Part shown: positions 38,101 through 64,000 of the stretch, piece by piece
How positions within the stretch are numbered: position 1 is the stretch's first letter
How the letters are laid out: the number at the start of each line of letters is the position of its first letter
Assembly (NCBI GenBank): GCA_964036045.1
Contig: OZ038379.1
Coordinates: forward strand, 14,198,001-14,262,000
DNA length: 64,000 bases
Reading direction: 5' to 3'
From: Eutreptiella sp. 'Long Island Sound 2002'
Lineage: Eukaryota; Protista; Euglenida
The notes under the pieces: generated by a model
The model's input: the letters and a program-made list of their open reading frames with translations, nothing else
Told to the model about the DNA's origin: nothing
Database searches by the model: none
Position numbers and translations under genes: made by a program

Positions 38101-41100
38101 GGGGCTGCGAAAGGTCTGTCTCTCACAACCCCCACCACACCCATCACCAACCGCCGCCCCGGTTACGTCGCTAATACAACACAGCACAACACAACACAAC
38201 ACAACACAACACAACACAACACAGCACAGCACAACACAACACAACACAACATCAATGACAACCAAGAGTTCACATTTCATGCGGAGTGCAATGTGCATGT
38301 AGTGAAGATGTTGTAAATTGCATGACACACGTTCAAAATGACAACACAAGGCATGGCACTCAAGCTGGCACAAACTGTCGTGTCACATGGACCTGGTACC
38401 ACCTGGGCATGTTAACACGCTGTGATATGGGTATTTTGGGATTACCCCCCCTCCCCTTGTGCTTCTGTGTCAACACAGTCCAATTTTGGGAGCAAAACAT
38501 CCCCTCCCACATAGTACCATCTCTCCCAACAACAACAATGGACAGAAAAGATCGGAAGAGTAGATGGGCAGTTGATATACTTTGAGGTCCATGTACTGTG
38601 CATCACCACTACTCGTGGATGTGCTGCATCACAAAGCCCCCATCACAGGCTCCACCGCAGTGCCCATCCCAGTCCCCATGCACAGCCGTGCAGGCGAAGT
38701 TGCCGTGAGTGCTGTATGGGTTGGTCAACCTCCCACATCACATGTGGTGGACAGACACCCTCCGAATTAGGAACGACTGAATGTGACGCCTGTCAGTATT
38801 GGCAGGGAGATGGCTGCAATTCTGAGGAGGGAAATGGACACTCCACAGTCACGTCGGCCATTATCAACCCGGGGGGGAAGGAGAGGAAACAGAGGATACC
38901 CATGCAGTGAAACTGCAGTAAGTTTTTCCGGCAACACCTCATGTGACTACTTGGACCATATGCGGCCCCCAGGCGTCGTCCTCGGGTTTCCCAGTCCAGA
39001 AAAAGCCACAAGGGCCGGAGGCAAATGGGTACCTGCGAGCAAGCGGTGGGGGGGTTGGCACGAGGCCATGGTTTTGGTTTGTGCGGGGGGGAAAGCACCG
39101 ACCCGACGCAATTTGTGAAGGCAAGAACGGGTGACTGTCCAGGGCCCCGTAAAGAAACAACCACCAGACGGATTGTCACACAGGGGGCATAAAGATGGAG
39201 TACGTTTGCTGGCTGGTCCGTGTATGTTGTAATTTGTGTAATTTTTTTTTGCGGTAAATGCGTGTAACAAAAAAATCGTCTAGTCGTGTAATTTTTTTTT
39301 TTTGCGGTAAGTCGTGTAAGCCCGTCACACGCATTACCGCAAAAAAAAATTACGCATTTACTGCAAAAAAAAATTACACGTCTAGACAATTTTTTTTTGT
39401 ACACGACTTACATTTTTCACGGTTGGTCCTTGAGGTTGGCTCTCGGTTGTGTTTTGCGGAGGCGTGCCTATGGGGTGTGGACCGCGGATGAGTAGATTGT
39501 CGTTCAGGATTGGTACCAACCTGACTGGACGAAGAGGGTGTGACATTACATCGGAGAGAGCGCTGCTTGAATGCCCAATTTTGTGCTTTGTGCGTGTCTG
39601 AAGTCAGTGAAAGATGGTGTGACAGTCAGAAGATTTCCCACGGAAGCTTGCTTTGCGCTGCGGGCACGAGCCGTAATAGTGTCCCGAAAAACTAAAGCTC
39701 TGGCTGATTTCTTGAATTTCCAGCTCACGATTTTCGGTCGAAAACTCGGGATCTCCATCTTTTTTTCATTTGTCGTGGAGAGGCCTATAAATATGACAGC
39801 ATGCGCGCGCATGCCAGCACAGCTGAACGGGGATCTCTCCCCCAAGCGGTGCCTTGCCGCAGCCCCTCCTGCGTTTTCCAGACGTGGATTGGATGGCCGG
39901 CGGCGATGGCCTCACCCGGCACAGCGTAGCAGCACTGGGAATGGAAAGCGCGGGCAACATCAGCTTTGGGCTGTCCTGGACCACTTTTTCCGGGCCGCTT
40001 ACCAGCGACGGGGCGACCGCATCCCTGGCAAGCGAGAACGCCACCGTGGAGTTCAGCACAACGGCCGGGGCCGACACCGCCACTGCGTCAGCCTCCGGGG
40101 GAGACGCGAGCGCCTCGACCTTTGCGCGCCGGTTGTTGCAGATGCCGGAGGACAGCCCCGGCTTCACCAAGCACTTGGTGGGCGGCCAGGGGTTTCTGTC
40201 CATGGGCAACGTCAGCATGGCCACCGGGGCAGACACCACGTTCTCGGGCTCTCTGAACCACACCGGCTCCGGGATCATGAAGATGAAGGAGGGCGCGCGC
40301 GCGCTGTTCACCGGGAAGTACCCAGAGACCGGACGCGGGCTGCTGCAGGCCCCCGACTGGAAGACAGGCGACGGCCTTACAAAGCACCGCGTCGCCGCCC
40401 TGGGGATGGAGAGCGAGGGCAACATCAGCGTGGCGCTGTCTACGACCTCTTTCGAAGGGCCTCTGACGAGCGATGGGAAAACGGCATACATTCAGAGCGC
40501 CAACGGCACGTTGGAGTTCTCGTCTCCGAACGCTGAAGCCCCGGTGGAGGGCCCGGAGGTCGATGGAGAGACGTCCGTGGCCCAGCGGCGGCTGCTACAG
40601 GAGCAGGAGGCGGCGGCCGCCCGGGCCAACGCAACCAAGCATTTGGTCGGTGGCCTCGGGTTCCTGTCCCAAGGGAATGTGAACGTAAAGTCTGGCGCCG
40701 ACACTACGATGCAGGGCCCGCTGAACCATACCGGAGAGGGTTTGATCAACATGACGGTCGGGGCGCGTATGCTGTTCACTGGAGCTTACGAGGACGAGGG
40801 CAGCGATTCTGAGAGTGGGGCCCGTCGCCTCATGGGCTTCCTGGACGGTGCAGAAAACCTGACGAGCCATCGTGTGGCGGCGCTGGGGATGGCCAGTGCG
40901 GGCAACATCAGCTTTGACAAGGCTGTCACGACGTTTGAGGGCCCGCTGACCAGCGACGGTGCGACCGCAAACCTCTACAGCATCAACGCCTCCGTCAAGT
41001 TTGCGTCCAGATTGGCTGCAGACAAGGTCGTCGGCGTTGAGGCTGAGGACTCTGCACTTGGGCGGAGGCGCCTGCTGCAGCTGGAAGATGGCACGTATGA

Positions 41101-64000: not shown

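Follow-up and report, generated by a model that had tools for sequence, protein, structure and literature searches.

A giant euglenid gene with a single exon of about 38 kb, encoding a repeat protein predicted to form one continuous β-helix with RRLLQ loops under strong selection

The DNA analysed here is a window of 64,000 nucleotides (nt) from the euglenid Eutreptiella sp. 'Long Island Sound 2002' (assembly GCA_964036045.1, contig OZ038379.1, forward-strand positions 14,198,001 to 14,262,000), and all positions are given in window coordinates unless another contig is named. It carries a real, expressed euglenid gene with about 20 small exons on its 5′ side and, after them, a single unbroken exon of about 38 kb. 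A first-pass annotation had proposed 22 small exons joined in phase to a single exon of at least 24.1 kb starting at 39882, absent from the list of open reading frames (ORFs) and completing a giant repeat protein of more than 9,800 amino acids (aa) that belongs to no named family. The parts of the gene are as follows.

39882-64000, + strand: giant exon, part within the window (open frame, RNA contigs, ENA gene call)
38114-39881, + strand: last intron before the giant exon, GT..AG, its joint supported by two RNA runs without a mismatch, and its interior free of RNA depth outside repeats
37468-38113, + strand: upstream exon of about 1.3 repeat units (RNA contigs, in-phase translation)
36120-36514, + strand: upstream exon with its 3′ end directly after an RRLLQ motif (RNA joints 35549^36120 and 36514^37468)
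35127-35549, + strand: upstream exon (RNA contig, the loose 5′ end of which gives 34054^35127)
33646-34054, + strand: upstream exon, 3′ end backed by RNA and 5′ end placed by a CAG acceptor
2013-33369, + strand: about 16 further predicted small exons, called from codon usage, a GT-AG model, conservation in a paralogue and similarity to distant homologues, without RNA evidence

An exact six-frame scan of the window bore out the stop-free frame. From 39827 to 64000 (24,174 nt), + frame 2 runs through 8,058 codons with zero in-frame stops, and the runner-up among open stretches anywhere in the window measures 3,120 nt. The ORF list had indeed missed this frame, which runs off the window end, and showed only shadow ORFs there. 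Positions 39882-39883 complete a split codon, the codons of the giant exon lie in + frame 2, and the product of the window part has a mass of 848 kDa and a predicted isoelectric point of 5.2. Fragments of a second assembly of the same organism (ENA ERZ25074135) surfaced through a profile search of the repeat unit, and contig ctg10392_37x_l of that assembly is 99.995% identical to window positions 27376-48316, with one gap in 20,942 bases. This contig carries a single gene call of 12,631 residues beginning at an in-frame ATG at window position 39941, so that the frame is taken to stay open to about window coordinate 77,836. Computed from this call, the giant exon is about 37.95 kb long and encodes 12,650 residues, and is thus larger than had been proposed; the longest human exons, at about 17-22 kb, are shorter. 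The whole protein would have at least about 14,300 residues and a mass of about 1.5 MDa before glycans. A search with residues 6000-8057 for protein sequence beyond the window end found nothing, and the last 603 aa used as query found only two relatives and no C-terminal remainder of the window protein.

Transcription was assessed by aligning contigs of two estuary metatranscriptomes, together with two DNA runs of the organism, to positions 34501-40500. Exons and introns were covered equally by the DNA runs, and the RNA contigs showed no mismatches and zero intron depth except at high-copy repeats. Spanning RNA contigs gave three GT..AG junctions (35549^36120, 36514^37468 and 38113^39882), the last of which places the start of the giant exon exactly at 39882, and a fourth (34054^35127) was given by a 195-nt loose end of one RNA contig that matches 34023-34052. 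When joined, the RNA-backed exons give one open frame that leads directly into the giant frame and continues the same repeat, in keeping with the in-phase splicing that had been claimed. Further into the exon, 52-77% of sampled 31-mers over 56001-64000 were present in four RNA runs, compared with 20-40% in RNA runs over 36000-41000, which is largely intron; the RNA word content over 56001-64000 is consistent with transcription along the giant exon.

The upstream gene model was obtained by codon-usage scoring and simple GT-AG dynamic programming, and contained 18-25 exons according to the intron penalty. With the middle penalty there were 20 upstream exons starting from 2013 (5,065 nt, about 1,690 aa), examples being 4215-4385, 5415-5596, 11326-11481, 13010-13318, 14561-14876 and 17411-17658. 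The model mis-placed two of the boundaries defined by RNA and its exon count is approximate. The earlier figure of 22 upstream exons was therefore reproduced roughly (about 20) and not in its exact value, with RNA backing for four of the junctions, including that into the giant exon; likewise, the total of more than 9,800 aa compares with about 9,730 aa found within the window, the full protein being larger. The predicted exons of 2013-33369 encode degenerate β-helix rungs, mostly without RRLLQ, and the earliest RRLLQ lies in a predicted exon at about 30498-30615. Nine upstream exons are conserved in the same order and at 40-73% aa identity in a paralogous giant gene (L006, below), and no conserved exon was found upstream of 2004 in that comparison. 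Pfam gave nothing meaningful on the upstream exons, and a signal-peptide scan of the 5′ region found no convincing start, with one weak candidate at the ATG at 1723. The gene may start upstream of the window.

The giant exon consists, within the window, of about 50 units of about 160 aa, with a mean aa identity between units of 58%, and the full protein would hold about 80-90 of them. Each unit is made up of two homologous halves of about 80 aa, the first ending in ...GADTTFxGPLNHTG and the second in ...TTFEGPLxSDG. Between the halves lies a short linker with R-x-L-[LM] (35 of 49 units), and the unit ends with a variable acidic linker followed by [KR]-R-R-L-L-Q-x-[DE]-[DE]-G. The features of the array are listed below.

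40127-63625, + strand: 50 RRLL[QA] motifs (49 RRLLQ and one RRLLA), spaced 146-167 aa apart, from a motif scan
40842-43700, + strand: a block of three units (1,425 bp) recently duplicated in tandem, with 99.6-100% identity, and reproduced in the second assembly
47540-55760, + strand: recent segmental duplication within the exon, about 2.4-2.9 kb at a 5,802-bp shift, 99.4-100% identical, containing the longest exact repeat
57443-60268, + strand: six units with a GC content at third codon positions (GC3) of 0.84-0.96 and the same protein motif, against 0.54-0.75 elsewhere in the exon

R-R-L-L is found at 50 of the 50 unit boundaries in the window, and the pattern R.L[LM] occurs 86 times against an expectation of 4.5 ± 2.1. 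At the DNA level the RRLL[QA] motifs are spelled by 28 distinct 15-mers, which draw on five to six codons for Arg and four to six for Leu. Selection was analysed by pooled pairwise comparisons of 35 non-redundant units, between which synonymous sites are saturated (synonymous divergence, dS, 1.1-2.8). The ratio of nonsynonymous to synonymous change (dN/dS) was 0.18-0.20 in both cores, 0.25-0.5 in the linkers and 0.03 in RRLLQ, so the most constrained element of the unit lies inside its least constrained part. The RRLLQ motif is under selection. The open frame is also not a chance or satellite ORF, because its units retain 58% aa identity and a core dN/dS of 0.18-0.20 while their synonymous sites are saturated.

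In addition to the listed duplications, a block of 830 bp recurs at a 2,360-bp shift with 99.4-100% identity. Within the window, the recent duplications occupy the first two-thirds of the exon sequence, older units lie towards its 3′ side, and the longest internal stretch repeated exactly measures 1,559 bp. This pattern suggests that the array grew, and is still growing, by unequal recombination of intron-free units. Blocks of 1.4-2.9 kb recurring at 99.4-100% identity are also what an array expanded by the assembler could look like, and together with the existence of a decayed fragment copy elsewhere in the genome they are the points in favour of an artefact or dead sequence, be it an expanded array, a pseudogene or an accidentally open satellite. 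We consider this very improbable: no stop interrupts 8,058 codons despite saturated synonymous sites between units, spliced RNA covers the exon, the sequence through the first duplicated blocks is reproduced by a second assembler, and long accurate reads typically exceed the 1,559 bp of the longest exact repeat. Gross expansion in assembly is unlikely on the last two grounds. A satellite with an accidental ORF and an assembly artefact were accordingly rejected as accounts of the locus, on the stop-free frame, the spliced RNA and the second assembly. As to the number of units, the concern over assembly expansion voiced in the first-pass annotation is weakened rather than closed, the independent check of copy number extending to 48316, up to which the second assembler agrees.

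Synonymous codon usage is strongly heterogeneous within this one exon. GC3 is 0.83 in the RNA-backed small exons and 0.54-0.75 in the recently amplified units. A 1,013-aa antisense ORF (56807-59848, - strand) lies over the GC-rich units; it matches no Pfam family, and as a gene candidate it was set aside and read as a shadow of GC-rich coding sequence.

In agreement with the earlier suggestion that the protein has no named family, Pfam searches (E up to 1) with three 1,000-aa pieces and with the relatives gave no meaningful family, and a profile of the unit matched 21 proteins among 1.84 billion cluster representatives. All 21 are unnamed or called 'hypothetical protein', and most are ORF fragments of the same organism, of paralogues or of a close relative. 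A paralogous giant gene is present in the same genome (L005:10669-20654 and L006; ENA ERZ25074135, ctg10954_42x_l) with an open frame of 8,117 aa. It has an almost identical higher-order repeat of three units (about 489 aa) and keeps KRRLLQ at every unit boundary; its giant exon begins one unit later, after an intron following NHTGE, where the window gene has no intron. The decayed partial copy of the array (L001:7252-14548, ENA ctg9098_44x_l) is 88% identical to 43735-46674, contains a frameshift and degraded motifs, and is fused to an unrelated long ORF. At least five more large contigs carry short unit fragments of 47 aa. In a relative, a genomic contig (L004, Logan SRR20314591, 2,034 nt) encodes units of about 43% identity in which an intron coincides with the motif (...GFGR closes the exon, and CRLLQ is read in the following ORF) and Cys residues flank the loops. 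The more distant homologues, P0014 among them, combine a signal peptide, read immediately before the called start, with rungs, a domain at the C-terminal end, a membrane helix and a short tail; as a query, P0014 found three proteins. The metagenome contig from which the distant homologues come also carries a NIPA magnesium-transporter gene and was for that reason taken as eukaryotic. In the distant homologues nearly every R-x-L is R-R-L and stands at the end of a module (RRLTD, RRLGD, RRLAD and others).

The introns contain further elements. A 1,039-aa ORF with reverse-transcriptase and zf-RVT domains (7799-10918, + strand) belongs to a retrotransposon of the long interspersed nuclear element (LINE) type that sits, in the same orientation as the giant gene, within one of its introns. 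In the last intron, an (ACAAC)15 microsatellite at 38176-38251 breaks both RNA and DNA contigs, and positions 39225-39400 hold copies, in both orientations, of a T-run followed by GCGGTAAG, with a depth in the DNA runs about four orders of magnitude above the flanks; these copies are present in RNA contigs too. Rfam gave no match to this high-copy sequence, which looks like a derivative of a spliced leader. Another high-copy intron repeat at 36700-37300 reaches hundreds to thousands of times the depth of its flanks, with many discordant joints between DNA contigs. A predicted exon of 85 aa at 27428-27682 (+ strand) has six Cys and is unlike the β-helix rungs; its language-model features resemble a small domain found beside GT18 glycosyltransferase and related proteins (score 0.91-0.94), Pfam was silent on it, and a single-sequence fold reached a predicted local distance difference test (pLDDT) value of 40.

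For structure prediction with AlphaFold2, the input alignment combined one three-unit segment with 27 further ones from the window protein. The model had a predicted template modelling score of 0.74, with pLDDT above 90 in the cores, where each half-unit forms seven short strands, and below 50 in the RRLLQ loops and the mid-unit linkers. According to this high-confidence prediction, the units make up a single continuous right-handed parallel β-helix resembling pertactin, from which the motif loops project as excursions. Rungs of about 20-25 residues, each with three short strands, stack along the modelled chain as in a β-helix solenoid. Structural re-alignment with VIA-align placed pertactin at Z 19.8 (root-mean-square deviation 2.8 Å over 280 residues spanning all three units), and further matches were AlgG, Ag43, EtpA, TibA, UpaB and phage tailspikes, all of them right-handed parallel β-helices; Ag43, EtpA, TibA and UpaB had Z above 17, with alignments spanning model residues 38-483. 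Shape matches in the ESM Atlas were models of pertactin and autotransporters, and look-alikes found by language model were weak β-solenoid leads. Plain Foldseek searches of the PDB and AlphaFold clusters gave only weak matches (E above 0.005), the alignment being disturbed by the disordered loops. At about 4.7 rungs per unit, 4.8 Å per rung and about 90 units, the rod is estimated from the model to be about 0.15-0.2 micrometre long.

The structural neighbours also include alginate epimerases, PL6 lyases and tailspikes, which could be taken to mean that the protein is a β-helix carbohydrate-active enzyme (a lyase, hydrolase or epimerase) rather than a structural protein. We give this almost no credence, and it was rejected: the neighbours share the scaffold at 6-13% identity, Pfam matched no enzyme family, and some 80 near-uniform units contain no distinct catalytic module.

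The closest likeness in fold is to passengers of bacterial autotransporter and two-partner systems (pertactin, Ag43, TibA, EtpA), with which the protein shares a predicted three-stranded right-handed β-helix (Z 17-20), the form of an elongated surface rod, and rungs rich in Gly, Ala, Ser and Thr. It differs from them in being eukaryotic, encoded with introns, rich in N-glycosylation sequons and about 10-30 times longer, and the bacterial passengers do not have its regular disordered RRLLQ loops. Pertactin, AIDA, PATR and Beta_helix of Pfam did not match the three 1,000-aa pieces or the relatives at E up to 1, nor did the Chlam_PMP repeat (GGA[ILV] / FxxN), whose motifs are different from those of the window protein; no β-barrel translocator was seen in the window part, the C-terminus lying beyond the window. 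Among euglenozoans, the trypanosomatid DGF-1 and the rib-like proteins of Bodo saltans are large surface β-helix proteins with a signal peptide and a membrane region (bioRxiv 10.64898/2026.07.27.741050). DGF-1 resembles the window protein in its right-handed parallel β-helix modules, and the distant homologues of the latter share the signal peptide and membrane helix. It differs in having ribs of about 390 aa recognised as PbH1 or pectin-lyase-like, a hat domain and several membrane helices, whereas the units here are of 160 aa, are unrecognised by Pfam and form a continuous helix. The Foldseek match to DGF-1 is weak (rank 30, E 0.09) and reflects a shared fold only; DGF-1 matches are reported to be lacking in Euglena gracilis (bioRxiv 10.64898/2026.07.27.741050).

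The window protein contains 239 N-x-S/T sequons compared with 54 ± 7 in shuffles, a 4.4-fold enrichment, at conserved positions, and 71% of all Asn lie within sequons. Dense, conserved sequons, together with relatives that have a signal peptide and an anchor, argue for entry into the secretory pathway and a place outside or on the surface of the cell, and the enrichment suggests that the RRLLQ loops would be luminal. The protein represents a new, unnamed and very narrowly distributed family of giant eukaryotic β-solenoid glycoproteins, as judged from predicted fold and sequons, with a periodic RRLLQ loop motif under strong selection. On balance we favour the reading that it is a giant secreted or surface glycoprotein rod in which the loops are probably sites for a protease of the secretory pathway. 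Taken separately, the assignment of the RRLLQ loop as a protease site, made by analogy, is close to evenly poised; it is the best reading of the motif because an invariant basic-hydrophobic pentapeptide stands in a disordered, exposed and freely evolving loop at every unit boundary. An endoprotease of the secretory pathway would recognise the RRLLQ loops and the weaker mid-unit R-x-L-[LM] sites, and the rod would be nicked in its loops or cut into modules. Since the helix is continuous, nicking or loop trimming is likelier than release of free modules.

Two kinds of processed protein provide the analogy. Repeats of the diatom silaffin Sil1p end in RRIL or RRNL, which is removed on maturation, and RXL has been proposed as a general processing signal (PMC4557024). 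As in the window protein, where RRLL stands at 50 of 50 boundaries, every Sil1p repeat is bounded by R-R-x-L; the Sil1p repeats, in contrast to the folded β-helix segments here, are short, disordered and rich in Lys and Ser, and there is no sequence relationship. The precursor of the Lassa virus glycoprotein is cleaved at RRLL, and both RRLL and RRIL are recognition motifs of site-1 protease (S1P, or SKI-1) (PMC2685025). The S1P/SKI-1 pattern R-x-hydrophobic-L fits both RRLLQ and the mid-unit sites, in loops with pLDDT below 50, although known S1P substrates have one or a few sites and the window alone has at least 85. In apicomplexan parasites, the export motifs PEXEL (RxLxE/Q/D) and TEXEL (RRLxx) occur once, near the N-terminus after the signal sequence, and act in protein export. 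RRLLQ, and the RRLxD/E of the relatives, fit these motifs letter for letter, in what is a resemblance of pattern only, and in the window protein the motif is internal and repeated. Judged by sequence, the enzyme could be S1P-like, a diatom-type RXL enzyme, a dibasic convertase or an aspartyl protease of the PEXEL/TEXEL type.

The same gene and fold could instead belong to a giant adhesin or fibre that is never cut, its RRLLQ loops serving to bind, to cross-link (e.g. through the conserved Gln), to control folding or to act as spacers. The model has one uninterrupted helix across units, much as in bacterial giant adhesins that act uncut, and Leu-Leu-Gln is invariant beyond what a dibasic protease needs, while the cleavage that we favour is read from the motif itself. 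An invariant pentapeptide at each boundary within a freely evolving loop is, however, typical of processing sites in repeat precursors, and the motif is identical to a documented protease site; the uncut rod is therefore possible but in our estimate rather unlikely.

Several observations weigh against a secreted rod with cleaved loops. With cut loops, a continuous β-helix would hold together, which makes the release of separate modules doubtful, and the cleavage itself is proposed from the motif sequence. The fourth motif position varies in distant homologues (I, T, G, A, E), which fits recognition of the RRL type better than S1P. The alignment behind the fold prediction held only the units of the protein itself. 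A single unpaired Cys is present in most units, an unusual feature in a protein outside the cell, and the conserved Asn-x-Ser/Thr could in part be structural Asn/Thr ladders of the helix rather than glycosylation sites. The C-terminus lies beyond the window, so no membrane anchor was seen for the window protein, nor was a signal peptide or start codon identified other than the weak candidate at 1723.

A more specific role was considered in view of what is known of euglenid surfaces. The mastigonemes of Euglena are non-tubular glycoprotein filaments, of which the larger glycoprotein is polydisperse on agarose/SDS gels (PMC2110158), and a second flagellar glycoprotein of high molecular weight is present in Euglena (PMC2111491). 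In our comparison with this literature, the flagellar hairs and coat of Euglena are giant, polydisperse, xylose-rich glycoproteins, and a protein as huge, rod-like and sequon-rich as the one encoded here might be the precursor from which euglenids build their flagellar hairs (mastigonemes) or the fuzzy coat of the flagellum. To our knowledge, no gene has been identified for the glycoproteins of the Euglena hairs or coat. The proposed link to flagella is by analogy only, a rod of about 0.2 micrometre would be far shorter than hairs of 1.5-3 micrometre unless it polymerised, and database searches found no homologue in Euglena gracilis, so that we regard this role as improbable. A wider version, in which a flagellar hair or another extracellular fibre of euglenids would be built from a precursor of about 1.5 MDa, with a dedicated secretory protease cleaving its β-helix in about 170 RxLL loops, is quite unlikely too. 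Were it true, a folded polyprotein would be processed after folding into a nicked or modular rod, and we know of no description of such a mode of maturation for β-solenoids.

At the level of the genome, the single exon of about 38 kb sits among genes that are otherwise split into many exons, and it illustrates how the largest gene of a region can escape ORF tracks and gene finders altogether. The still-active amplification of its units is a natural case of repeat-array evolution within a coding exon, in which a single short motif is far more strongly constrained than the fold. If that motif is a protease site, the protein would offer a tractable system for the processing of a folded repeat rod, and it is a candidate for the giant surface glycoproteins of euglenids that have been known biochemically for decades.

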